Sequence record: NC_028950.1
Direction: 5' to 3' (one strand)
DNA length: 64,000 nt
Of the stretch, positions 14,560-27,321 are shown piece by piece (position 1 is the stretch's first letter; each line of letters starts with the position of its first letter). The position numbers were made by a program, and so were the translations under genes. The notes beneath the pieces were generated by a model that searched no databases, had not been told where the DNA came from, and worked only from the letters and a program-made list of their open reading frames with translations.

Positions 14560-15411
14560 TTATTCTTCTTCGGCAAGTGCGTTCTGGGGTGAACCGTTGG
14601 ATTCTCCTTCGACACCGCATCCTCGATTTTCTTTCGAGCAGAGTCCGTCAACTTCAACGGTATTCTTTCCTTGGACATCAGATTCCTCTTTGTTCAAGTA
14701 AGCCAGTCGCTCTGCAATCGCTTCTTGCAGAGTCGTCTTATTGCGGCGTTCCCAAATAAAAACGGTCTTCGCCATGGTCTCACACGCGACACAACGTTCG
14801 CATGGAACGAACTTCACATCGTCAGGCTGGTCATCTCCAGCAGGTTCAGGAAGTTCGCAAATCCAGAGATGCGGAATGATTTCCTTAGGCATCTCTTTCA
14901 GAATCCGATCCTTCGTGTGATACATCAGAGGAAACTCCATCGGCACTTGCTCGTAACGCGCAAATGCACTGGTGTGTTTCCATGCAGCTGCCAGATCCCC
15001 GAGATGCATTGAGATCTGATCGCCCATCACGATACCCATGCAGACTTTGGAATGCTTATTGCCATCTGCCGCATATTGCAAACCAAACTGCCACAACGGA
15101 GCCTGAGCGAATGTATGATCGGGAATGTGGTTGTTCCAGCTTTTCTTCGTATAGCCATCTGCCGGATCCACTTCCTTAACCAGCACCGCATCGCCCAGAT
15201 TAACAATCGTGTCCGAGAGGACACGATTACCAGTCTTCTTCTCGAAGAATGCGATGATCTTCTTCCGGGCAGCCAGTTCCATCGGAATTTTGTCTGGAGA
15301 CTGATGTGCTTTGATGTAGCAGGTATAAACATCACCTTCTTGCAAAGCACGCCAGAGCATGTACGAGGAGTCCATGCCGCCCGAGAATACGAGAAGAGGT
15401 TTCTTAGCCAT
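14560..15411 (-). CDS. QueC-like PP-loop ATPase (7-cyano-7-deazaguanine synthase family)
   Basis: LLVFSGGMDS PP-loop and C-terminal Zn motif C-x18-CERCVAC. Confidence 0.8.
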   Translation of the reverse strand: MAKKPLLVFSGGMDSSYMLWRALQEGDVYTCYIKAHQSPDKIPMELAARKKIIAFFEKKTGNRVLSDTIVNLGDAVLVKEVDPADGYTKKSWNNHIPDHTFAQAPLWQFGLQYAADGNKHSKVCMGIVMGDQISMHLGDLAAAWKHTSAFARYEQVPMEFPLMYHTKDRILKEMPKEIIPHLWICELPEPAGDDQPDDVKFVPCERCVACETMAKTVFIWERRNKTTLQEAIAERLAYLNKEESDVQGKNTVEVDGLCSKENRGCGVEGESNGSPQNALAEEE

Positions 15412-16148
15412 TATTTTTCTTCCTTCTTATCTTCGAACTCCGAATGCGAATCGAGGTTGCTGAACGCGACCTTTCCTTCGGGAAGAGGTTTGGTCAAAAT
15501 TTCATCCAATTTGTGTTCCGGACGAAGACGACCGACAAGCATCTTGCGATGGATGTTCAGCGGATCACCTTCACCGCGTGTCATCGGAACATTCGGATTC
15601 ACGTCCGGTCCTTTGAACTTATCCGAATAACCGCCGACTTCCATCATAGGCGGATGATCTGCATCCGGAGGAATGACGCCGAACGACATCGAACCATCCG
15701 GATTCATCTGGCAGTCGATTGCGATCGGCTGGGCGCGTGTCTTCAGCATTTCCATTCCTTCTTCAGAAATATTCCGATCGACCATCACTTCAACTTCCGG
15801 CATTTCTAACGAGATCTTCATCGTCAGACCCGCCTTGATCGCCTCATTCAACGCCATCATCGATTTCCGTTCTGTAACGGGGTGAACGATAAGGGGATAG
15901 AGGCTTCCACGGTGGATGTCAGGATCGCGCGGGACGAAGGGGGTAGGACCGGGCGACGAGAAGATCACCATTTCGCCTTTACGAAAACCGCCATCCAAGA
16001 TGGTGTTCATGAATTCGGAATTAACTGCGCCACGACGCATCATTTCCTGCCGCTCGTTACTTACGAGACCTTCAAGTGCATCCATTGCGTCGTTACCCAA
16101 AACAGCACGCAGTTGTTTTTCGATCTTATCGTTCATGCTTACCTTCAT
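15411..16148 (-). CDS. Hypothetical protein containing a degenerate DnaB H1/H1a fragment
   Basis: MNTILDGGFRKGEMVIFS...RKSMMALNEA...ISLEMPE. Confidence 0.6.
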   Translation of the reverse strand: MKVSMNDKIEKQLRAVLGNDAMDALEGLVSNERQEMMRRGAVNSEFMNTILDGGFRKGEMVIFSSPGPTPFVPRDPDIHRGSLYPLIVHPVTERKSMMALNEAIKAGLTMKISLEMPEVEVMVDRNISEEGMEMLKTRAQPIAIDCQMNPDGSMSFGVIPPDADHPPMMEVGGYSDKFKGPDVNPNVPMTRGEGDPLNIHRKMLVGRLRPEHKLDEILTKPLPEGKVAFSNLDSHSEFEDKKEEK

Positions 16149-16597
16149 TTTAAAATGATTGAGGACAACGCAGCGATGGCGTATTTATCACCCGCCATAC
16201 TTTCGCACGTTGCTCGAAGTGCTTCTACATCACTTGCGCGTTCCATCGCCAGATGTTCATCATCCTCCTTCATCTGGATGAATTTCATCTTCGCACGAAT
16301 GGCGCGGTAATACGGACGAATTTCGTCTATACAAGCCCTCAGCACAGTGAGAATGTCTCTGCCCGGCCCATCTTCGTGGAACAGTTTGTGCAGCAGAGGC
16401 TGATTGTCATCGTTAGGCGGCAGTAACAACAATTCCCGACACACCGCCATGCGTATGTACTCATAACGGGCATGTACTGCAGCCACGCTAATGCCGAAGT
16501 CTTTGCCGACACGGGCAAAACCCTTACCCTCGAAAACGATTTCTTCGAAGATACCGAAATAACTGTTTAGGTTTTCCAATGTCTGCATGATGATCAC
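16145..16597 (-). CDS. HTH-containing protein (sigma-70 region 4-like)
   Basis: IVFEGKGFARVGKDFGISVAAVHARY. Confidence 0.5.
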   Translation of the reverse strand: MIIMQTLENLNSYFGIFEEIVFEGKGFARVGKDFGISVAAVHARYEYIRMAVCRELLLLPPNDDNQPLLHKLFHEDGPGRDILTVLRACIDEIRPYYRAIRAKMKFIQMKEDDEHLAMERASDVEALRATCESMAGDKYAIAALSSIILK

Positions 16598-16788
16598 CGA
16601 TTCAGATGTGAGACGAGAGCTTCAGCTTCGGACTGCGAGTAAACCACAGCCAGCTGATCACCATCTTCATCGATGATTTCGAACTGCTCGACGTCCTGCA
16701 ATTCGTCGACAGTAACCGGGTCACCACTTTCGTGCTTGAAGACGTGTTCTTCAACTGCGTCTTCTTCAATCTTAGCCCATTTGTACAT
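16594..16788 (-). CDS. Small acidic hypothetical protein (64 aa)
   Basis: GGAG RBS before MYKWAK; the longer track start runs through terminator 16838-16855. Confidence 0.65.
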   Translation of the reverse strand: MYKWAKIEEDAVEEHVFKHESGDPVTVDELQDVEQFEIIDEDGDQLAVVYSQSEAEALVSHLNR

Positions 16789-16863
16789 TTTGTTGCTCCT
16801 CAGTTTTAAAAAGACCTGGTAATTACTTCTTGAAACAGGGGAGCCGTAGCTCCCCGACGGCAC

Positions 16864-17487
16864 TTACCGATAGCTGTAATAGCGAGGTGCTTGACGGTAA
16901 GCGTAGTTAGGTGGGTCGTAACGCGGTTCATAACCCCGTGGGTAATACTGGCCGGAATAGCCACGCATAGCCGGTTGGATCACGATGGGAGTCGGACCAT
17001 ACCAAGGCTGTTCGTATTGCTGAACGTATTGCGCGGGTGGCCGTTGGTAATACTGAGGCGCAGGAGACCGGACGAGGTGTGGTGGCTCCTGGTAGTACGC
17101 ATCTTGAGGCACGTACTGCTGCTGATACGACGGTTCATCGGCATAGACTTCCTGAACCTGGTAGGGATCCTGCCGTTGCTGCATGCGAGGCAGCGGACGC
17201 GTATAGTCGCGTGCGACTGGCGGCAAAGGAGGAGGCTGTTGAGCTTGCATTTGCTTTGCATCATAATCCCCTCGCTGAATCCAACCGTTACGGAAAGCCC
17301 TGGCAGTGGTCGACATGGGATTGTCCGGGTCTTCGGCCCGACCATCCGCATTACGCGACCAGTCTTCAGGAGTGATTTGTCGCGGCTGACCATTCTGATC
17401 CGGGACATCGTACGCATACTCCGGACCATCTGCCCAAGCTGTGGCACTGACAAGTAACAGCACGCAAAGCGCGATTCGAGTTTTCAT
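16864..17487 (-). CDS. Exported Pro/Gln/Tyr-rich protein
   Basis: Sec signal peptide MKTRIALCVLLLVSATAWA followed by low-complexity sequence. Confidence 0.7.
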   Translation of the reverse strand: MKTRIALCVLLLVSATAWADGPEYAYDVPDQNGQPRQITPEDWSRNADGRAEDPDNPMSTTARAFRNGWIQRGDYDAKQMQAQQPPPLPPVARDYTRPLPRMQQRQDPYQVQEVYADEPSYQQQYVPQDAYYQEPPHLVRSPAPQYYQRPPAQYVQQYEQPWYGPTPIVIQPAMRGYSGQYYPRGYEPRYDPPNYAYRQAPRYYSYR

Positions 17488-17513
17488 TTTTCTTCCCCGT
17501 GTTTTAAAAGACG

Positions 17514-18068
17514 TTACTTCTGCTTCGGAAAGAGATAAAAGATCGAGAGCAATCTGCAATCTTTATCCAGTTTGATGGACTGGTTGCCGAGCAACAATCT
17601 TGACGCATTTTCAAAACCACGACTGCATGCCGAGATATAGTCGTCCATGGACATAATCATCGTGCCAAAGCACTCAGTCGTACGGACAATCGAATCATCA
17701 GACTCTGACGCGAAATTCAGCGGGCAGACCTTCTGATCGATGGGATCCGAATCGGTGTGAACCGGACAGATCCAGTTACTACCCCGTTTATCCTGAATCA
17801 CCATGAAAGCACAGAGATTGCGGATCTTGTTTGTATCTTTGTCCAGATACTCCAAATACTCCCCCTCTTCACGGGTCTTGAGGATATCCTCATAGATCGT
17901 GGAGAAAGTATCGGAGTCCATGATCACCTTCCCGAAGAAGATCAATGGATTCTGAAAAGGCTCCGGGTCTTCTTTGAGCAGAAGGGAATTCTTCCACTGA
18001 ATCGGAGCGGCCGGGTTTACGGGTTTATCTTCATTCTTAGGTTTATTTACAACAGGATTCATGATCAC
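17514..18068 (-). CDS. Hypothetical protein
   Basis: ORF downstream of a putative early promoter. Confidence 0.65.
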   Translation of the reverse strand: MIMNPVVNKPKNEDKPVNPAAPIQWKNSLLLKEDPEPFQNPLIFFGKVIMDSDTFSTIYEDILKTREEGEYLEYLDKDTNKIRNLCAFMVIQDKRGSNWICPVHTDSDPIDQKVCPLNFASESDDSIVRTTECFGTMIMSMDDYISACSRGFENASRLLLGNQSIKLDKDCRLLSIFYLFPKQK

Positions 18069-18186
18069 TCACCTGTATTTATTTTAAAAACGGACTGCCT
18101 TTTATTAGGCAGGCTTTTCCTCCCAAGTTCAAGCATTATTGCAGACGAGTTATGAATTACTCGCTTGTCTACAGAACTTCAGTAGG

Positions 18187-18194
18187 ATGATATA
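18187..18194 (-). promoter_or_regulatory. Putative early promoter core TATATCAT
   Basis: Intergenic, after hairpin 18218-18256, upstream TTTC. Confidence 0.5.
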
Positions 18195-18217
18195 TTTCCG
18201 AAAAGAAATAAAGCAAA

Positions 18218-18256
18218 CATAATCCCAGGGAACCCTTTCGGGTCCCTGGGATTATG
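18218..18256 (-). terminator. Long hairpin terminator
   Basis: CATAATCCCAGGGA...TCCCTGGGATTATG. Confidence 0.8.
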
Positions 18257-18279
18257 TCATTGTAGTTACAGCAGCCTAC

Positions 18280-18723
18280 TTATGCAGCAGGCGGGGGAGT
18301 CCCAGCAGCCGGTTGTGCCGGCGTCTGGGGTGCAGCAGCCACCGGCGGTGCTGCAGCCGGTGTAACAGCGGTTGCCAAAGCCTGTGATGCGACTGCGGAA
18401 ATAAGGGCTTCAGCGTTGGCGACAGCCTGCGCGTCATTCGCGGATGTCGTCAATGTATCGAGATGCTTCTGTTTGATCAGGCGCGATGCTGCGCCGACAA
18501 ACGAGATGATCGCGATGAGGTGCGCCAGTTGCGGAGGAGCACTTGCGCCGGTCAGCAAACCCGACTGGAGAGCCAGGTTGTACAGATCCGGAGCAGCGCC
18601 TACGATGGCGAAGAACCACACCGAGTACATCGTGTAGAACTTACGCCATTCGGCGACGAGTTCGAGACCAACCTTATTCAGGCCAGCTTCGATCTTGTCT
18701 CCGAGTGCGGAGAAAAAGCTCAT
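18280..18723 (-). CDS. Putative holin-like membrane protein
   Basis: LVAEWRKFYTMYSVWFFAI motif typical of small phage holin-like families; two TM segments; Ala/Pro tail. Confidence 0.5.
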   Translation of the reverse strand: MSFFSALGDKIEAGLNKVGLELVAEWRKFYTMYSVWFFAIVGAAPDLYNLALQSGLLTGASAPPQLAHLIAIISFVGAASRLIKQKHLDTLTTSANDAQAVANAEALISAVASQALATAVTPAAAPPVAAAPQTPAQPAAGTPPPAA

Positions 18724-18734
18724 GTTTACCTCAC

Positions 18735-19337
18735 TTATGAAAGAACTACGATACCAACGTCCTTGACACGGAGTTCTCCGTTGGGCGGATAAACCATGAC
18801 GTGAGGAACATTAGCTGCATACTGACGAAGCGTTTCTTCTGCGTCGTCTCTTTGCCTGGCTTGCTCGTAAAACCACTTGGTCTTGCCGAGATACTTCTTG
18901 CACTTGGATTCCATTGCTCCGGGACCCGTGCCAATGAAACCACGAGCGCGCATTTCTTTATAGAAAGCACGCAGCGCCATTTCACGTTGTTGTCTTGTCA
19001 TATGGTACCAATCGAAACGATCAGACCACTCGTCCATCTCCGGAGTCTCGACGACTTCGAATACCATATCGTGCGGCATGTCGGCCGTATCCACGATATG
19101 CATGTAGAGTTTTTGTCCAGACTTCCAGAACTCGTGCTTATGCTCGAAGATCCTGGCAATGTCTTTCTCAGGAATTGGTTCGATGAAAAGCGAAATGTGG
19201 TCGTAGTAACCACCCGGCATCCCATAGAGTGCCTGATCGGCCACATCCTTCTTGATTGCTTCAGGAGAAAGATGGTGAGTCAGTCGGCTCGTCTTGAGAG
19301 TCGCGTATTTCGCTTTTGAGTAATGATAGAAAAGCAT
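18735..19337 (-). CDS. Conserved jumbo-phage hypothetical protein
   Basis: MLFYHYSK start coupled by TAATG to the HAD gene. Confidence 0.7.
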   Translation of the reverse strand: MLFYHYSKAKYATLKTSRLTHHLSPEAIKKDVADQALYGMPGGYYDHISLFIEPIPEKDIARIFEHKHEFWKSGQKLYMHIVDTADMPHDMVFEVVETPEMDEWSDRFDWYHMTRQQREMALRAFYKEMRARGFIGTGPGAMESKCKKYLGKTKWFYEQARQRDDAEETLRQYAANVPHVMVYPPNGELRVKDVGIVVLS

Positions 19338-19822
19338 TACTTGATGTCGAACGTCTTGGTTCCGTCGCCTTCCTCTTTCGGAGGTAGGACATCCCACTGA
19401 ACGAGAATCTCGCGCAGCTTCACCCAGTCAACGCAGGGTTTACCGTTGCTACCGATCTTGAGCGGAATACCGATACCAGCATCGTCCACATAGATGGAAG
19501 CGTAGACTTTGGGAGAATTGGACCATTTCTCCTGCTCCGGGTTTTCGTTGATTCCCCAGAAGTCCACATTGTTCTTGTTGCAATAGACGACAGCTTCGTG
19601 CAGCTTGTCTTCCGATCGCATGGTCAGAAGAATGAGCTTGATGCCTACCTTCTTCAATTCTTGAAGGACTTCGATAGCCCCTTCGTTCGGTTTACCGATG
19701 TACGGAAAGTCGTTCTCGACAATTGTGCCGTCGAAATCGATCGAGAAGATGGTCTTTTCGAATTTCTTCTGTGACTCAGCTTCGTCGACTTGCGTCACTT
19801 CGTTAGTGTTAAGCCACGGCAT
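19337..19822 (-). CDS. HAD-superfamily hydrolase (BT0820-like)
   Basis: DFDGTIV motif I, LLTMRS motif II, IYVDD motif IV. Confidence 0.85.
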   Translation of the reverse strand: MPWLNTNEVTQVDEAESQKKFEKTIFSIDFDGTIVENDFPYIGKPNEGAIEVLQELKKVGIKLILLTMRSEDKLHEAVVYCNKNNVDFWGINENPEQEKWSNSPKVYASIYVDDAGIGIPLKIGSNGKPCVDWVKLREILVQWDVLPPKEEGDGTKTFDIK

Positions 19823-19875
19823 ATCTTCACCCTGTTATTTGTCACAAGATCAGCCAAAAAAAATATATAGGACAT

Positions 19876-19905
19876 AGAATGGATGGGCTTTCGCCCATCC
19901 ATTCT
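19876..19905 (-). terminator. Hairpin terminator
   Basis: 13-bp stem with GAAA loop, then TATG and a T-run. Confidence 0.8.
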
Positions 19906-19915
19906 GTACCACTCG

Positions 19916-20386
19916 TTAGTCCTGAGTAATCAGGACGTATTCCCATTTATCGGCGTTGGGAATGCACCGGTCCTCTGCTGCCTTATAGGCTGACGCTTGA
20001 TCCCACAGCGATGACTGTTCGATCAGAGTGTGAATGATAGAACATGCCGTACCAACCTTATCGTATTCTTCGCGAGAAAGAACACGAATCTGCTTGTTTT
20101 TGCTGTCCCACGACTTGTGGACGATCGCTTGAGCTTCTTCCAGGATTTCCTGGATACCGACCGACTCGAAGTTCTTCAGCAACTCCAGACCCACATACAT
20201 CCGGATCTTCAGCGTAATGCGATCGCCCAGGTTGGCGAAACCATCACGATAGGCGAGCAGCCGGAAGTAGCAGTTCAGCGTCATCGTAGTGGAATCGTCT
20301 TCCGAGTACTCGAACTTCTTTGCCGAGTATTCAACGATGCCATCTTGCTTCGGACGGAAGCCTTTGCGGATTTGAGTTTTAGCCAT
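19916..20386 (-). CDS. Hypothetical protein
   Basis: ORF in operon. Confidence 0.65.
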   Translation of the reverse strand: MAKTQIRKGFRPKQDGIVEYSAKKFEYSEDDSTTMTLNCYFRLLAYRDGFANLGDRITLKIRMYVGLELLKNFESVGIQEILEEAQAIVHKSWDSKNKQIRVLSREEYDKVGTACSIIHTLIEQSSLWDQASAYKAAEDRCIPNADKWEYVLITQD

Positions 20387-20398
20387 TTTGATGTTGTC

Positions 20399-21292
20399 TT
20401 ATTTCGTTTTGAAAAGGTTTACGACGTTTTGGGGTTTGGGCCGAACTTTCAGATTCGGGATTTCGTCATACTGCTCACGCAATACCTTCTTGGCCCACTG
20501 GTAATACTTACCCGTGTCCCGACGATACGACATCGGGATAGGTGTTTGCGTCATGAACGAATACGCCATTGCACATTCGCAATAGAACTGCTCGTCGATC
20601 AGGCCGTAGTACTTTGCCTGTTTCTCCGGATCCAGAAAGAGACCGTTCATTTCAGCCAGATGAATCGAACCAATTACTCGATCCAGTTCGATCTTGCTGA
20701 AAAGTCCGATCGGATAATCCGAATCGTCGACGATGTCTGTTGAACACGGTACGCGATCTCGCTGGACGATCGCCAACTGAACGAGATAGTCCAGTACCTG
20801 CAGACCTTCGTAACACAGGCGCTGAGGAATCGGCGTTTGCTGGAACATCGCATTCGCATTGAAGTACGAGAACATCGACAGCTTGGTCATTACCTTTGCC
20901 GTCGTTTCATTCAGCGCCTTCACGAATTCAACATCCGAACTACGCTCTTGTACTTCTTGGACGTTGTCCTGCAAGAGCTTAGCCATCTGGCCGCGAGCAA
21001 TTGCCAGCTGTTCGATTTCCAGTAACCAACCAGGCTGAACCTGAGTCGGGTAAATCGCAACATCCTTGAAGCCGAGCCTGCGATGGGCAATCGTGCCGTC
21101 GGTATCGACCTTTACCGATTCCAGCGTGGGAGGAACAGTCTCAGAGCCTCCCAGCCATTCATATACGCGAATGGCATTAGATGATGAATGGAACTTGCCA
21201 TCGAAGTCTTTAAGGCATCCTTCAATGCTAGGTAAAACATATTGTTGTTGTCCGAGGTTAATTGTCAAAGGGGTTTTCATTAGTAACTCCAA
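20399..21292 (-). CDS. Hypothetical protein
   Basis: 297-aa ORF in operon. Confidence 0.7.
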   Translation of the reverse strand: MELLMKTPLTINLGQQQYVLPSIEGCLKDFDGKFHSSSNAIRVYEWLGGSETVPPTLESVKVDTDGTIAHRRLGFKDVAIYPTQVQPGWLLEIEQLAIARGQMAKLLQDNVQEVQERSSDVEFVKALNETTAKVMTKLSMFSYFNANAMFQQTPIPQRLCYEGLQVLDYLVQLAIVQRDRVPCSTDIVDDSDYPIGLFSKIELDRVIGSIHLAEMNGLFLDPEKQAKYYGLIDEQFYCECAMAYSFMTQTPIPMSYRRDTGKYYQWAKKVLREQYDEIPNLKVRPKPQNVVNLFKTK

Positions 21293-21813
21293 TTCGATAG
21301 GCGCTGGGCCGTTACTGCGTTTTGTGGAAAGTCATTCAGTTCGTCGAAATGACTCTCATGTACTTCCACTGTGAAGGTGAAGTTATTGATTTTGGTGATC
21401 TCGGTTACAGCAGTGAGGTCACTCGTGAAATGAGGATCACGCTCATGCCCACGTGGAAGCTGATGAGGTGCGAAGTAATAACCCGCGCCCTGCAACTCTC
21501 CGAATACTTCGTTTCCGCAATACAGAACAAGATCTCGCAAGCGATCTCGATCCAGATGGGAAAGATGATAACGCCCGATCCCAAATTGACTGATGATGCT
21601 GTACGACAGATCTTCGAGATTCTGTTCGCATGCATTCATGGATCGTGGAAACATTGCGCATGCGGTCATGACTTCTTCGATGAAAGCGTAGAACGTAAAC
21701 GCTCTCAGAAAGCGAAGATATTCAGGCCATGGTTCGCGTGCTGCTCTTTTTATTTCATTCTCGTACGCGTCGTAAGAGCGTTTGAGCCTTATAACAAAAG
21801 TTAGATTGGCCAT
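21280..21813 (-). CDS. Hypothetical protein
   Basis: ORF in operon. Confidence 0.6.
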   Translation of the reverse strand: MANLTFVIRLKRSYDAYENEIKRAAREPWPEYLRFLRAFTFYAFIEEVMTACAMFPRSMNACEQNLEDLSYSIISQFGIGRYHLSHLDRDRLRDLVLYCGNEVFGELQGAGYYFAPHQLPRGHERDPHFTSDLTAVTEITKINNFTFTVEVHESHFDELNDFPQNAVTAQRLSNWSY

Positions 21814-22222
21814 TTCGCAGTGGATGTTTTACAACGATTGCAAAATTGGAACGAGAGATTGGAACGACCCTAACTGGCCTAGTTCCTCTCTCACGGATAT
21901 AATCGAAGAGACGTACATCGTCAAACATCTCAACGATAGATTCACAGATTGCGTAAAGAATACCGCAGACTTTTACATACGGCTCATCTTGCGAGAAGAT
22001 GTATTCCTGAACGATTCCCTTATCGTAGAGTTTACCGATCAGGTACTCGATCTCATTTATTTGTTGCCGTGCTTCTTTGGCATTGTCCATTCCTTCGGTC
22101 AGGAACCTAACTAACTCCTCCAACAGATCGCGACGATTTACGTCCTCGAACATTCCGGTCGTATCGAAACGACGTATATGGCGATCAATGTTGAAGATAA
22201 CACCGAATCGATATTTCGCCAT
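21755..22222 (-). CDS. Hypothetical protein
   Basis: AGGT RBS directly after terminator 22245-22276. Confidence 0.65.
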   Translation of the reverse strand: MAKYRFGVIFNIDRHIRRFDTTGMFEDVNRRDLLEELVRFLTEGMDNAKEARQQINEIEYLIGKLYDKGIVQEYIFSQDEPYVKVCGILYAICESIVEMFDDVRLFDYIRERGTRPVRVVPISRSNFAIVVKHPLRNGQSNFCYKAQTLLRRVRE

Positions 22223-22237
22223 GATGTACCTAATTCA

Positions 22238-22394
22238 AAAAGATCCCATCCTGGAGCCCGTCGGCTCCAGGATGGGTGACACTATTGACACAGACAGGAT
22301 CAACGGCTAAATCGGATCACACACCCATGCCATTAGTCCCGAGAGAATAGCGCTCGTACCGAGGAGAAGGTACTGGAGATGAGCAGCTATTCAA
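22238..22394 (-). ncRNA. Candidate structured sRNA or attenuator leader (about 155 nt)
   Basis: Bounded by TATATTAC promoter (22399-22406) and a 14-bp terminator (22245-22276) plus U-run; long 5' hairpin; only an 8-codon ORF. Confidence 0.5.
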
Positions 22395-22398
22395 TTAG

Positions 22399-22406
22399 GT
22401 AATATA
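22399..22406 (-). promoter_or_regulatory. Early promoter TATATTAC
   Basis: Exact match to the phiKZ early promoter consensus, with upstream TTTCA. Confidence 0.7.
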
Positions 22407-22419
22407 TCGGTGAAATGAG

Positions 22420-23682
22420 TTACACCGCTGCCGGCTTGAAGCGGATCGGCGGATGCGACTTGTAATACACCGTCAGGCGAGTGGCGTCGAACTTCGTCAC
22501 GTCTTCCAGAGTCGGGTCGACGATGATGCGAGCCGGTGCCATCGGAGTGCGATCCAGCTGCTTCTTCACGCCTTCATGCTGGTCATGGTAGATATGGTAG
22601 TCGCCCATGAAGTGGGTGTATTCCCACGGCACGAAACCCGTAACCTCGGCGAGTAGGTGAGCGAGCAGCGAATACATGCCGACGTTGAACACGGTGCCGA
22701 GCGGTACATCTTGCGAACGTGCGAAACATGCGAGCGAGAGTTTGCGGGGGATGAAGCCTTCCGCACCCTTGATGCTTTCGAGCAGTTGCAGGCCGGCTTC
22801 GGTGAGTTCCAGATGCTTGTCGTCGCCGAGGTTGTACTGCATGCCGACTTCTTCCGTTTGACGAATCCAGCCCTTGTCGAACAGGAACTTGTTGGCGAGC
22901 ATCTTGTAATACTGCTCTTGCGCTTCATGCGTGAGACCGCGCATGCCGTTGAAGACCGTATCGAACGTCTTCTCGAAACCGTCGTGGGAATCGAGCGAAT
23001 AACGCAGGACTTCCAGATCGGACATCGGAGCCGTGTTGACCTGCCACATCGAGTGACACGGAGCGAGAGCCATACGGCCAGCGTCCGCATTTGCCGACGG
23101 CGACATCTTGGTGTCGGGCAAGAGACCCGCATGCCAGACGTTCACGACGAGACGACGGCTGTCCGGATTGTTCTTCAGTTCGTTGACGATATTCATCAAC
23201 TGATCGACGCCGCCCGAACCACCGTTCTCGAACGGGGTGAAACGTTCCTTGACGAGGTTCGCCATGAGGCCACGGATCTTCACGACGAGATCCATCGGCG
23301 TACCTTCGTACGGATTCAGATCGTCGATCTGCATCTGCAGGCGTTCCATATCGGCACGGGTAATGCCGTTCGTCCAGTTACGCCACTGTTCACCGTACAT
23401 CGGTCCGATCGTGCCGCTTTCCGGACCCATCCACGAGTTCCAGATCTTGTTGTCGCGGTCTTGCAGCCAGTCCACCGAGACGATGCCCTTGAGCATCCAT
23501 TCCAGTTCTTCGGCGATCTTCTTGTACGCCACTTCACGCGTGGTCGGAATCGGCCAGATGCCGTGACGCAGCGAGAATTTCATCATGCCGCCGAACTTCG
23601 AAGTCGTACCCGTGCCGGTACGATCGGTCTTCACATCACCCGTTTCCAGGATGTCTTTCAGAACGTCGAGATACTGTTTCAT
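22420..23682 (-). CDS. thyA: Thymidylate synthase with two large insertions
   Basis: DRTGTGT, GPMYGEQWRNW, DSRR, ALAPCH catalytic Cys, RSQD, FN, GDYHIY. Confidence 0.95.
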   Translation of the reverse strand: MKQYLDVLKDILETGDVKTDRTGTGTTSKFGGMMKFSLRHGIWPIPTTREVAYKKIAEELEWMLKGIVSVDWLQDRDNKIWNSWMGPESGTIGPMYGEQWRNWTNGITRADMERLQMQIDDLNPYEGTPMDLVVKIRGLMANLVKERFTPFENGGSGGVDQLMNIVNELKNNPDSRRLVVNVWHAGLLPDTKMSPSANADAGRMALAPCHSMWQVNTAPMSDLEVLRYSLDSHDGFEKTFDTVFNGMRGLTHEAQEQYYKMLANKFLFDKGWIRQTEEVGMQYNLGDDKHLELTEAGLQLLESIKGAEGFIPRKLSLACFARSQDVPLGTVFNVGMYSLLAHLLAEVTGFVPWEYTHFMGDYHIYHDQHEGVKKQLDRTPMAPARIIVDPTLEDVTKFDATRLTVYYKSHPPIRFKPAAV

Positions 23683-23716
23683 TTATTTTTCACCAAAAAA
23701 AAATACTGCAGTTAAA

Positions 23717-24097
23717 TTACAAACGAATTTCCATGACCGACAATGCGGTGCCGGACTTAATGATCATTCGCTCAGGAAGAGGGATGCAGCTTATCTGTTC
23801 GAGATACTTTTTGAAGTAATACATCGTCTCTTCAACTCGCAACAGATATGACATCACATCTGCCGGGAGTCTGCCGAGTCTTTCTCTGATGTCAATTTCA
23901 ACATCGTCCAGGAATTCACACAGGACGTAATCGAAATCGTCACCATCTCGAACCATTTGTCCTTGCAATCTCTCTACTAATTCCTCACAGAGCTCAATGT
24001 AATCGTATTCTATAAAAATCGGCTGTTCTTCCCTCAACAACCGACCGATGCGTCTTTTCTCGTAAGTATCACCGACGAGGTAACGGGTTTCTCGCAT
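23717..24097 (-). CDS. Hypothetical protein
   Basis: Acidic helical ORF. Confidence 0.6.
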   Translation of the reverse strand: MRETRYLVGDTYEKRRIGRLLREEQPIFIEYDYIELCEELVERLQGQMVRDGDDFDYVLCEFLDDVEIDIRERLGRLPADVMSYLLRVEETMYYFKKYLEQISCIPLPERMIIKSGTALSVMEIRL

Positions 24098-24447
24098 TTG
24101 CGTATCAATCCGAAAAGCGACAGCGGACTAACGTTGTGGATTTCGAAATCCCCCAGAGAGTCTAGAAGTTCGAACTGTGACAACTGTCTAACCATTTGCT
24201 TAGCCAACTTCGCAAGCTTCCGTAGAATCTTGTTGGCCTTTTCAAAAGTATTTCCCTGAGCATAAAGATAACGACGAGTGCCTTCCAAATAGTACCTTAG
24301 ACTTTTGGAAGACTTCTTTACGCCGAATACCCGGCTCACCCGAAGGTGTTCGTAAAATCCTTCCAGAAGTTTAAAATACCGCCGCTTAAAGCGAACGAGC
24401 TTTGGAACTGGCTTTTTAAAGCCAAAAAGAAGAATGTCAGTTTGCAT
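24034..24447 (-). CDS. Basic hypothetical protein
   Basis: First ORF downstream of promoter 24488. Confidence 0.5.
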   Translation of the reverse strand: MQTDILLFGFKKPVPKLVRFKRRYFKLLEGFYEHLRVSRVFGVKKSSKSLRYYLEGTRRYLYAQGNTFEKANKILRKLAKLAKQMVRQLSQFELLDSLGDFEIHNVSPLSLFGLIRKCEKPVTSSVILTRKDASVGC

Positions 24448-24487
24448 GCAATGAAAGGTTGATATGAAATCAACTTACAACAAAGTT

Positions 24488-24495
24488 GTAATATA
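24488..24495 (-). promoter_or_regulatory. Early promoter TATATTAC
   Basis: Exact consensus, downstream of terminator 24533-24559. Confidence 0.7.
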
Positions 24496-24584
24496 TGCCT
24501 GACCAAAACTGGAATAAAATGGACATAAAGGATACCAGGAGGCACGAAGCCTCCTGGTACTCTCACTCAGTCCTGACTAGCAGG

Positions 24585-24674
24585 TTACTTCACGAACAAC
24601 CACGGAAAGCACATTTCCCAACATGCTTGCACCATGACACCGTAGGCCAAACCCATCTGGACAGGAAGGAACAT
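24585..24674 (-). CDS. Possible 29-aa hydrophobic peptide
   Basis: MFLPVQMGLAYGVMVQACWEMCFPWLFVK*; starts 1 nt after the upstream stop and ends before the terminator. Confidence 0.3.
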   Translation of the reverse strand: MFLPVQMGLAYGVMVQACWEMCFPWLFVK

Positions 24675-24675
24675 G

Positions 24676-25968
24676 TTACGCCTTTTCGAGTGCGTTGAAT
24701 TCGCCGGTGATCTTGGCGAACTGGTCGTTGGTCAGCTGGAAGATGACGCGAGCGATGTACAGCGGATGCGAGATCTTTTCGCCGGGTTCGAGCGTTTCGT
24801 TCAGGCGGTTGTATTCGCCTTCCAGAATGCCCGAGTTCAGCACACCACGCACCAGCGGCCACTTGCTTTCGTCGCCGCACTGCTTCTCGACGACTGCCAG
24901 GTACACGCCCTTCTGCTCCAGTGACAGAGCTTCGAACTCTGCCTTGGTCAGGACGTATTCGCCCAGCACGCCCTTGGCCGATGCGTACGAGACCGAAGCG
25001 TTGACTTCTTCAGCGACCTTCTCGACCGTTTGCTCCGGAGCCGGATCGTTCTCGTCCAGCTGGACCGACACTTGCGCACGCGCTTGAGCCGAGATTTCGC
25101 GAGCCGTTTCAGCGTCGAGTTGATCGAGATCGCCTGCACGAACAGCATCGACCTTTTCAGCCACGCTCAGCGGTTGTTCGATTTCTGAAGCCGGGTTCGG
25201 CGGAGTCGGCTGTTCCTTCTTGGCCTTTTCCTTCTTCTTACCCGAGCCGTTCTGCTGACCATTGTTGAACTTCTCGCCGAGAGCTTGCAGGCCGGCGCCG
25301 ACGTAGTTCTTGAACTGGCCGGGCTTGAAGACGAGCTTCGGGTTGAAGACGAGCGCGGGCAGGTTCTGCTTGAGCTTCGACAGGACTTCTTGTTCCAGAC
25401 GGTCCGGACCGATGAAGTCGGCGAGTTGCACCACGGGCGAGATGATCGTGAATTCGAAAGCTTGATCGGTATCGCTGCCTTCCTTCAGCCAGAGCTTGCC
25501 CTTGATGCCTTCGACCTTCGGGCCGTCTTGCACGCCGCGGATGGCGTTGAAGAACACCATGTTGCCCAGCGGCACCTGGATCGTTTCGACCAGCGGCTTG
25601 TTGCGGCCGTGATGGATCGACGAGTAGTCGACGCGGTTCGTGTTCAGCTGAAGCAGGTTGCGGAAGAGCGTGACCAGCTGGCTGTCGGAGGGCAGTGCCG
25701 GAGCTTCGAGGATGCCGTAGTGGTTCTTGAACGAGTCGCTGTTGACGAGCGCGTTCAGAGCCGACGCGAGCTTCGCCGTCAGATCCTTCATGTTCTTGCG
25801 ATGCTTCTTCAGTTCCGCCAGATTGCGGTTCAGGCGCCAGTAAGCGACTTCGCCGTTCGACAGATTCACAGCGCCCGACGGCAGGTCAGCCGACAGTGCA
25901 TTGAAGATCTTCGGCAGCGGCAGGAACTGGATGGTCTGGCCTTCGACGGTGCGTTGGAGTTTGCTCAT
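24676..25968 (-). CDS. Hypothetical protein, probably highly expressed
   Basis: 430 aa with strong C/G third-position bias and a Lys-rich linker. Confidence 0.8.
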   Translation of the reverse strand: MSKLQRTVEGQTIQFLPLPKIFNALSADLPSGAVNLSNGEVAYWRLNRNLAELKKHRKNMKDLTAKLASALNALVNSDSFKNHYGILEAPALPSDSQLVTLFRNLLQLNTNRVDYSSIHHGRNKPLVETIQVPLGNMVFFNAIRGVQDGPKVEGIKGKLWLKEGSDTDQAFEFTIISPVVQLADFIGPDRLEQEVLSKLKQNLPALVFNPKLVFKPGQFKNYVGAGLQALGEKFNNGQQNGSGKKKEKAKKEQPTPPNPASEIEQPLSVAEKVDAVRAGDLDQLDAETAREISAQARAQVSVQLDENDPAPEQTVEKVAEEVNASVSYASAKGVLGEYVLTKAEFEALSLEQKGVYLAVVEKQCGDESKWPLVRGVLNSGILEGEYNRLNETLEPGEKISHPLYIARVIFQLTNDQFAKITGEFNALEKA

Positions 25969-26160
25969 GATGTACTCTTGAGTGAGGTTTTGAAAGTCCC
26001 AAAATCGGGCACGATGAAGTCTGGATACGCTCAGACAGCTTTTCCAGCGAATGGATCGGTTTTAAGTCAGCACGTGCAAAGATGCGTATCATGCCAAATC
26101 ATAACAACCTAACGATAGAAAATAACTTTAGACAAGAGGCCGAAGCCCCCTGTCTTTTTG

Positions 26161-26574
26161 TTATAGTGAATGGTACAGATGCACGGCCCAGTACATGATC
26201 TTTCGTTTCCACCACGGAGTACCGAGTACTTTCATGGCTTTTTCGAAAATCAGATCGACTTCATCTTGCGAAATCCTCAGAACCGGATTATCCCCGTTCC
26301 GTGTCAGTGCGAGAGTTGTGCACAAGTAATCGTGCATTACTGCTGCCTGACCGTACACGCCCCACGGAGGAAAGATTCCCCACAGAAGACGCGGAACAGT
26401 AGCGCCATCGGTGATGAATCCCTTCGGGACGGTAACGTATTTTTGGTCTATGACCTCACCGATGAAAAACGTGAACGTATCGTCGGTATGCCAGAGGTCT
26501 TTGTCTTTTGCTTTCGACAGCGCTTCGTCGTAAATGATACCGACGTCGTTGTCGAATGAACCCACAATCGTCAT
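26161..26574 (-). CDS. DUF1353 family protein
   Basis: VTVPKGFITDGATVPRLLW...AAVMHDYL. Confidence 0.85.
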   Translation of the reverse strand: MTIVGSFDNDVGIIYDEALSKAKDKDLWHTDDTFTFFIGEVIDQKYVTVPKGFITDGATVPRLLWGIFPPWGVYGQAAVMHDYLCTTLALTRNGDNPVLRISQDEVDLIFEKAMKVLGTPWWKRKIMYWAVHLYHSL

Positions 26575-26652
26575 ACTCTCTCACTTGGCTGTTAAACCAA
26601 ATGATCATAAACTAGAGAGGGCTTTCGCCCTCTCTAGTCTACGTTTCGTTGA

Positions 26653-27321
26653 TTATGCCGGGAGAGTGATCTCTGCCGGGATCGTCGGGAGGTCAGCTGC
26701 CGTAGCAGCATTCGTCACCGCGTCTTTGAGCGTCCAACCCGCACCCAGGAAGCCCAGATACGCGTCGTAAGCTGCATCAGACAACGACACAATCTGCGTC
26801 GGGGTACACATATGGGTCACGTTTTCCCAGTCACGGAACGGCATGACCGGATCCGTAGTACCTTTGGCAATCAGCGCCTCCGCGCGAATGCGGGCGCTGG
26901 CGATGTTTGCACGATCGCCATCACGCAGCTGAACGTGACCTGCTACGTCGGTGAACGCGAACGAGAAACCCTTTTCGATCGCAGCCGTTACTTTGGTTGC
27001 GATTTCTTCGAGCATGCCAGTCTTCCTTACGGAAAGAGCATTGGCCAGCTCGTCAGCCGTATAGGCGCGGGCATTCCAGTTCTGCGACCAGACGCCGTTT
27101 GCAAAGACAGGATCGCCTTCGCTCACGACATCTGCCGTGGGTGCTGCTACGTCTTGAACGACGAAGTAGCCCAGACCGTTGAGATAGCTCTCGTCGGTCT
27201 CGTCCGGAAACGAGATGTTGGGATTGTCCAGCCGTACCTGACCCATGTAAACCGGGTAGGTATTGGGCTGACCTGCCGCACCGATCTTGACCAGGCGGGT
27301 AGAAGCGTTGATAGTCGCCAT
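26653..27321 (-). CDS. Tail fibre assembly-associated protein (DUF4376-like C-terminus)
   Basis: Follows the fibre gene; QLRDGDRANI...FRDWENVTH. Confidence 0.65.
   Translation of the reverse strand: MATINASTRLVKIGAAGQPNTYPVYMGQVRLDNPNISFPDETDESYLNGLGYFVVQDVAAPTADVVSEGDPVFANGVWSQNWNARAYTADELANALSVRKTGMLEEIATKVTAAIEKGFSFAFTDVAGHVQLRDGDRANIASARIRAEALIAKGTTDPVMPFRDWENVTHMCTPTQIVSLSDAAYDAYLGFLGAGWTLKDAVTNAATAADLPTIPAEITLPA

Follow-up and report, generated by a model that had tools for sequence, protein, structure and literature searches.

The question raised by this locus is what the phage encodes in the 197-nt gap that separates, on the minus strand, a thymidylate synthase-like gene from a gene of 155 aa. 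The window, i.e. the whole stretch of 64,000 nucleotides that was analysed, derives from Ralstonia phage RSL2 (AP014693; genus Chiangmaivirus), a jumbo phage of the phiKZ-like type with a genome of 224 kb, to which the 2 kb surrounding the locus are 100% identical. Window position 1 corresponds to genome position 124001, and the positions given below refer to the window unless the genome is named. The initial annotation had described a self-contained unit within the gap, consisting of a promoter, a structured RNA and a terminator, and had proposed that it acts either as an early small RNA or as a translation-coupled attenuator of the downstream genes. As far as can be judged from sequence comparison, the unit, with its promoter, structured RNA and terminator, is real, conserved and specific for the genus, and it most likely represents a new phage small RNA rather than an attenuator governed by an upstream open reading frame (uORF).

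The gene upstream of the RNA unit (thyA; 22420..23682, minus strand) encodes a thymidylate synthase homologue of 420 aa (Pfam PF00303, 1.5e-71; phrog_160, 3e-82). The Pfam profile has 266 positions and matches in two stretches, which points to an insertion of ~100 aa in the homologue, at about residues 220 to 313. The downstream gene (21755..22222, minus strand), whose start codon lies 14 nt past the U-tract of the terminator, carries no annotation in the RSL2 GenBank record and is annotated in FLC6, FLC8, RsoM3USA and other relatives. Its third codon positions are the least invariant (0.23 versus 0.57 and 0.71), a substitution pattern of the coding type, and its first eight codons differ among relatives by synonymous changes. 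The encoded protein has no match in Pfam, PHROG, PDB or Atlas, and no homologues were detected outside Chiangmaivirus.

Transcription of the unit would start from a promoter of the early type. A genome motif scan and the alignment of relatives delineate the sequence TTTCACCGATATATTAC at 22399..22416 (minus strand), with the 15-nt core motif TCAnnnATATATTAC. The exact TATATTAC reported by the initial annotation at 22399-22406 on the minus strand is indeed there, and its assignment to the phiKZ early consensus agrees with the consensuses for phiKZ, 201phi2-1, OBP and N1M2, for which predicted or mapped early promoters have been tabulated (PMC7058600 Table 2). The extended form, TTTCA-N3-ATATATTAC-N4-(G/T)TGA, fits the early promoters of the same four phages (PMC7058600 Table 2), and the early consensuses of 201phi2-1 and N1M2 end in GTG/GTGWA, 4-5 nt past the core (PMC7058600). 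At the RNA unit the sequence reads TTTCACCGATATATTAC-CTAA-TTGA and thus contains what characterizes such promoters: an AT-rich core of ~10 nt with TTTCA upstream and GTG/TGA downstream. Moreover, the same core followed by CCTAAnTGA immediately precedes protein genes of Cronobacter phage CR5 and of Serratia phage 2050HW.

Within the 224-kb RSL2 genome there are seven exact copies of TATATTAC / TCAnnnATATATTAC, all on the minus strand and all preceded by TCAnnnA, and near copies with one or two mismatches number 10 on the minus strand versus 3 two-mismatch matches on the plus strand. In the window alone TATATTAC was observed twice, against 0.4 expected. Written as TCAnnnATATAWWAC-N4-(G/T)TGA, the class comprises 17 minus-strand sites, at window positions 2331, 22413, 24502, 33706 and 62027 and at 12 places elsewhere in the genome; a leader of similar sequence (GTGAnTTTCC ... 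AAACTTTT) comes after many of the TATATAAC variants. At the RNA unit the promoter is invariant in all nine genomes compared, including 15 of the 15 core columns. By its motif, the promoter of the unit belongs to the early-promoter class of the phiKZ-like phages. Since the early promoter motifs of jumbo phages are centred near -10 (PMC7598289), transcription would start in the TTGA region past the core, at 22391..22395 and presumably around 22392 (minus strand), i.e. at the foot of the first hairpin, which would yield an RNA of ~156 nt.

The motif and terminator scans also revealed a second exact early promoter at 24488-24502, preceded by a terminator at 24532-24560 (both minus strand). This order, terminator followed by promoter, is the classic one and contrasts with the order of promoter, RNA and terminator at 22237-22416. 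According to the scans, the second promoter (start about 24495) opens an operon that runs through thyA and first meets a strong terminator at 22245. The RNA unit would thus be located in the 3' UTR of thyA, having a promoter of its own and sharing the terminator of the operon.

The predicted RNA is highly structured. An RNA of 166 nt folds at -70.1 kcal/mol, compared to a mean of -47.3 for shuffled sequences (z = -5.7; none of 200 shuffles was as good). All arms of the first hairpin that had been described were found in place on the minus strand. This hairpin, P1 (22345..22392), consists of an 11-bp lower stem, a 7-nt bulge on the 5' side, a 5-bp upper stem and an 8-nt apical loop. Its arms are GAAUAGC / GCUAUUC (22386-22392 / 22345-22351), GCUC / GAGC (22381-22384 / 22352-22355) and GUACC / GGUAC (22369-22373 / 22356-22360). 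The bulge AUCUCCA (22374..22380) and the apical loop UUCUCCUC (22361..22368) form two CU-rich unpaired elements that are, as the initial annotation had remarked, complementary to Shine-Dalgarno sequences of the GGAG type (here GGAG/AGGAG); the loop contains CUCCU, which we take to be the core of the anti-Shine-Dalgarno sequence on the basis of the usual 3' end of 16S rRNA rather than that of the host itself. The second domain, P2 (22277..22341, minus strand; apical loop AUUUAGC at 22306-22312), abuts the terminator, and its candidate fold is one long irregular hairpin. This extended hairpin is the minimum-energy fold in seven of eight homologues, RSL2 alone favouring a local nested fold.

The unit ends at 22237..22276 (minus strand) in what has the make-up of an intrinsic terminator: the perfect 14-bp stem that had been noted at 22245-22276, in which 10 of the 14 pairs are G-C, encloses the loop GACG and is directly followed by the U-tract AUCUUUUU at 22237-22244. 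It is the strongest terminator-like site in the surrounding 12 kb (15000-27000). The tail of 5 U is short for classical Hfq-dependent small RNAs. The opposite strand offers a poorer candidate: the structure holds many G-U pairs, the plus strand folds more weakly (-59.7 versus -70.1 kcal/mol) and the U-tract is confined to the minus strand. A plus-strand RNA with GGA loops, of the CsrA-sponge type, was therefore rejected, given the weaker fold, the conversion of G-U pairs to C-A mismatches and the lack of a promoter and a U-tract.

The statement that the unit holds no open reading frame longer than 8 codons is correct for AUG starts, but two frames open with TTG, one at 22394 with 25 codons and one at 22303 with 22 codons. 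The former is broken in relatives by indels of 1-2 nt and the latter spans columns with 1-nt indels, so that no conserved coding potential is evident. Promoter and terminator signals are both present and conserved and would delimit a putative discrete non-coding transcript.

The initial annotation had made its proposal dependent on conservation in related phages, and this was borne out. Each of the nine sequenced members of Chiangmaivirus (RSL2, RSF1, RsoM3USA, SURPRISE13, FLC6, FLC8, FLC4-4C, FLC4-5C and FLC4-11C) contains the intergenic region. Across the five lineages 62% of its columns are invariant (100% in the promoter, 70% in P2), whereas in the flanking genes of the same lineages codon positions 1 and 2 are 57-72% and position 3 is 23-34% invariant. 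Judged by these figures, the intergenic region is under purifying selection comparable to that on first and second codon positions. The stems covary: P1 shows compensatory double changes in 5 pairs and the terminator stem in 7 (12 in total), values that were reached in none of 500 shuffles. Overall 98% of the cells are paired, a fraction that drops to 30-47% when the partners are slid; for P1 the figure is 97-100% across 7 distinct sequences. In the terminator the U-tract is invariant, next to the seven compensatory pairs of the stem.

Moreover, the CUCC-type elements are conserved as sequence and as single strands. While the surrounding stems vary, CATCTCCAG in the bulge region and TCTCCTC in the apical loop are invariant in all relatives, and both are predicted to be unpaired in all of them. 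The mean unpaired probability in eight homologues is 0.99-1.00 for the bulge and 0.98-1.00 for the apical loop, so that AUCUCCA and UCUCCUC combine invariance with accessibility (unpaired P >= 0.98), as expected of conserved seeds. In P2, the candidate extended fold contains a single pair that covaries (A-U to G-C) together with four that vary one-sidedly yet stay paired (G-C/G-U). The 5' strand and the apex hardly vary, and the conservation of the 5' strand exceeds what pairing would require.

In the searches made, the family is restricted to a single genus, Chiangmaivirus. A covariance model of the RNA scored 164-187 bits on the Chiangmaivirus copies and at most 12 bits elsewhere in the same genomes. 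It found no homologue in CR5, Serratia phage 2050HW, Goslar, RP12, phiKZ, 201phi2-1, EL or OBP (noise of ~10 bits at most), and neither the model nor blastn-short revealed a second copy in the RSL2 genome. An Rfam 15 scan of 21500-23000, with E-values up to 10, gave no relevant match, the lone hit being a 14-bit chance match inside the neighbouring gene. In scans of IMG/VR with a 21-mer and an 18-mer from P2 and with a P1 pattern, RSF1 was the sole match. The 21-mer had no match in metagenome or prokaryote genome contigs; the 18-mer had 7 and 6 matches, in unrelated taxa, all of which were rejected by the covariance model. The scans thus point neither to a homologue in the host nor to a perfect target there. 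Soil metagenome DNA contigs contained variants like those of FLC, RsoM3USA or RSF1 and added no new covariation, and no RNA run that was searched carries the sequence of the unit. A CU-rich hairpin 4.5 kb before the window was also considered and set aside as an ordinary 16-bp terminator-like hairpin. It is a perfect CU/GA-rich hairpin (CTCCTACTCCTACCCC / GGGGTAGGAGTAGGAG, genome 119491-119526) with promoter-like sites adjoining on both strands, and it probably functions as a bidirectional terminator.

The attenuator that had been proposed on the basis of a uORF finds little in these comparisons to sustain it. Ribosomes translating the 8 codons would control an antiterminator pairing between AUGGGUG (22322-22328) and CACCCAU (22272-22278, overlapping the terminator stem). 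The elements do exist in RSL2: the AUG frame, MAWVCDPI, is found at 22307..22333 (minus strand), both pairing strands are present, and an RSL2 RNA that is ended before the 3' arm of the terminator folds into the pairing. CACCCAU, however, is replaced in all other lineages, and the pairing is specific for RSL2, as RNAs ended at the same point differ in the 7 other homologues and have no pairing of the terminator 5' arm in common. The peptide is not conserved either. In five FLC genomes a 1-nt deletion shortens it to 3 codons (Met-Ala-Trp-stop), across the other lineages codons 4-5 change non-synonymously (VC, ES, AG, VG), and the lone Shine-Dalgarno-like sequence before the frame is GGGA, 3 nt ahead of the AUG. 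Neither of the two hallmarks of a leader-peptide attenuator, a conserved leader frame and a conserved competing antiterminator helix, is thus found, and we consider this mechanism highly improbable.

The combination of an early promoter class, covarying stems and invariant unpaired CUCC elements makes an early small RNA with loops complementary to ribosome-binding sites plausible. Specifically, we favour a trans-acting early RNA with its own promoter and a terminator shared with the thyA operon, which would mask GGAG-type ribosome-binding sites; this reading has, in our judgement, slightly less than an even chance of being right. In such a scheme the virion RNA polymerase presumably reads the early-type promoter just past the stop codon of thyA and starts at ~22392, and the transcript would end at the terminator at 22237-22276, where the thyA operon ends as well, giving a product of ~156 nt with three hairpins. 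P1 would display the two invariant single-stranded elements, AUCUCCA and UCUCCUC, that are complementary to GGAG/AGGAG, and the RNA could pair in trans with the ribosome-binding sites of phage or host mRNAs and so lower their translation early in infection, while P2 and the terminator hairpin may confer stability or bind a protein. We infer the discrete transcript, its exact ends, the action in trans and the targets from the signals and the conservation described above.

This preference follows from the complementarity to GGAG/AGGAG and from the likeness of the unit to type I 3'UTR-derived small RNAs and to RNAs of 201phi2-1. Type I small RNAs such as MicL and DapZ have a promoter at the end of the upstream gene, share the intrinsic terminator of the mRNA, depend on Hfq and carry their seed in a single-stranded 5' region. 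The RSL2 unit has the same layout, but its candidate seeds are in a bulge and a hairpin loop and its promoter is of the phage early type. Masking of Shine-Dalgarno sites by loop seeds is also known, e.g. for the kissing loops of OxyS and fhlA and for the C-rich loops of RsaE/RoxS and RNAIII, and two loops can act together. Pyrimidine-rich loops facing GGAG-type sites are the common feature here; the motif in RSL2 is UCUCC instead of CCC/UCCC, there is no sequence homology, and the targets are candidates. Within the phiKZ-like phages, ONT-cappable-seq in 201phi2-1 identified 11 short RNAs (sRNA001-011), 8 of which result from termination just past a start site in a 5' UTR, and a short RNA upstream of gp182 was also mapped in phiKZ (PMC11512511). 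Like these, the RSL2 unit belongs to the same jumbo-phage lineage and combines a start, here a predicted one, with a terminator within 250 nt, in a 5' UTR or intergenic position (PMC11512511). It is nevertheless distinct from 201phi2-1 sRNA005 and the RNA upstream of gp182: the covariance model finds nothing in phiKZ and 201phi2-1 and gives ~10-bit noise in EL, the RSL2 unit lies past thyA and not before a tail gene, and the RSL2 RNA is predicted while theirs were mapped.

Potential sites of action exist. The region from -20 to -4 of 64 annotated FLC6 genes contains GGAG in 24, AGGAG in 13 and GGAGA in 7 cases, and any CU-rich loop matches many Shine-Dalgarno sites. In a scan of 485 candidate start regions the best duplexes were no better than those of shuffled queries (-18.8 versus -17.8 for the bulge, -22.8 versus -22.1 for the loop). 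One candidate site, ACUGGAGAUGA (genome 10628-10638, minus strand, outside the window), is a perfect 11-nt complement to the bulge and its flanks and lies in the 5' UTR of a conserved gene (start at genome 10623), which encodes 153 aa, hydrophobic over a stretch near the N terminus, and is preceded by an early-type promoter site at genome 10907. The match spans the Shine-Dalgarno site, and each of the five lineages retains 8-11 bp of it. Nevertheless, since the duplex energy is no better than that of the shuffled controls and there is no compensatory change among the five lineages, we treat the pairing as a lead and not as evidence of a target.

The near-invariance of P2 speaks against the small-RNA reading, as the masking of ribosome-binding sites offers no explanation for it. 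A cis-acting role also has to be weighed, in which a phage or host factor on P2 or P1 (of nut/RAT type, put-like or a riboswitch) would make the terminator conditional and set the read-through of polymerases from the early promoter and the thyA operon into the 155-aa gene and the cluster that follows. Transcription attenuators and riboswitches, like the put antiterminator RNAs of phage HK022, are conserved structured RNAs that lie directly upstream of genes, between a promoter and an intrinsic terminator. The RSL2 unit has this very layout, with a strong terminator and a gene start 14 nt on, but lacks a conserved competing helix, a conserved leader peptide and an Rfam match. The short distance implies that some read-through or an overlapping promoter is needed for the 155-aa gene, which also fits a role in cis, and the genome motif scan found no early-type promoter on the minus strand between 22413 and 2331 (~20 kb). 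In addition, P2 lies right against the terminator, and pairing alone would not require the degree of invariance seen in its 5' strand. Against this stands that the Rfam scan, with E-values up to 10, gave no match to a known riboswitch or leader family, that no alternative pairing with the 5' arm of the terminator is common to the lineages, and that P2 and the terminator are adjacent without overlapping. Moreover, the T-run with the A/T-rich stretch behind it resembles CTTTT(T)AAAA, an element that recurs before many genes, and the 155-aa gene may thus not depend on read-through. On balance we regard a conditional leader as unlikely. The CTTTT(T)AAAA motif is found 0-4 nt upstream of the Shine-Dalgarno sequence of many genes (window 4418, 11395, 12247, 13152, 14530, 16813 and 17510 on the minus strand, and others). 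In the genome as a whole it occurs 19 times on the minus and 7 times on the plus strand, and it is a candidate promoter or 5' UTR element for a different temporal class.

A passive role, in which the hairpins merely confer stability, on the thyA operon mRNA at its 3' end and on the transcript of the internal early promoter at its 5' end, with the terminator as leaky punctuation and no regulatory target, would be in line with the use of the terminator by the operon that starts at about 24495 and with the position of P1, whose beginning coincides with the predicted start, as is usual for protective 5' hairpins. A portion of the 5' arm of P1, CTAATTGAATAG, moreover overlaps a promoter-proximal sequence that is kept upstream of the protein genes of CR5 and 2050HW. 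Stability, however, needs the stems alone, and here it is the stems that drift with compensation while the bulge, the loop and the 5' strand of P2 are the most conserved; the conservation of the unpaired parts thus disfavours a passive element, which is not a probable account of the unit. The same unpaired parts could serve in a putative decoy RNA that, through the CU-rich elements together with the invariant P2, would bind a host or phage protein or the ribosome instead of mRNAs. Three pyrimidine-rich single-stranded segments (bulge, loop and a UCUCU linker) together with a sequence-invariant helix do suggest sequence-specific recognition, but no known protein-binding motif, no CsrA-type GGA repeats on the minus strand and no Rfam match were found, and we consider a decoy quite improbable. 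There is likewise only a slight chance that an immediate-early RNA, made by the virion RNA polymerase, would with its two CUCC-type loops mimic the anti-Shine-Dalgarno sequence of 16S rRNA and titrate GGAG-type sites globally, thereby reprogramming host or phage translation, or that P2 would act in a put-like manner on the multisubunit RNA polymerase of the phage.

The trans-acting early RNA that we favour would be a further phage-encoded small RNA. To our knowledge, a function is known for very few small RNAs from lytic phages and for none from the nucleus-forming jumbo phages; a literature search gave no description of the Chiangmaivirus RNA unit. The comparative support is unusually clear, in that the promoter class is defined, the stems show compensatory changes and the loops are invariant. 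In the course of the analysis the early-promoter motif of RSL2 was defined (~17 sites) and the 155-aa gene that is absent from the annotation was recovered. Phages of the genus Chiangmaivirus are under development for the biocontrol of Ralstonia and Burkholderia glumae. If expressed, the unit would give access, through an element that is compact and open to mutation, to early post-transcriptional control in this lineage and constitute the first RNA family for Chiangmaivirus.
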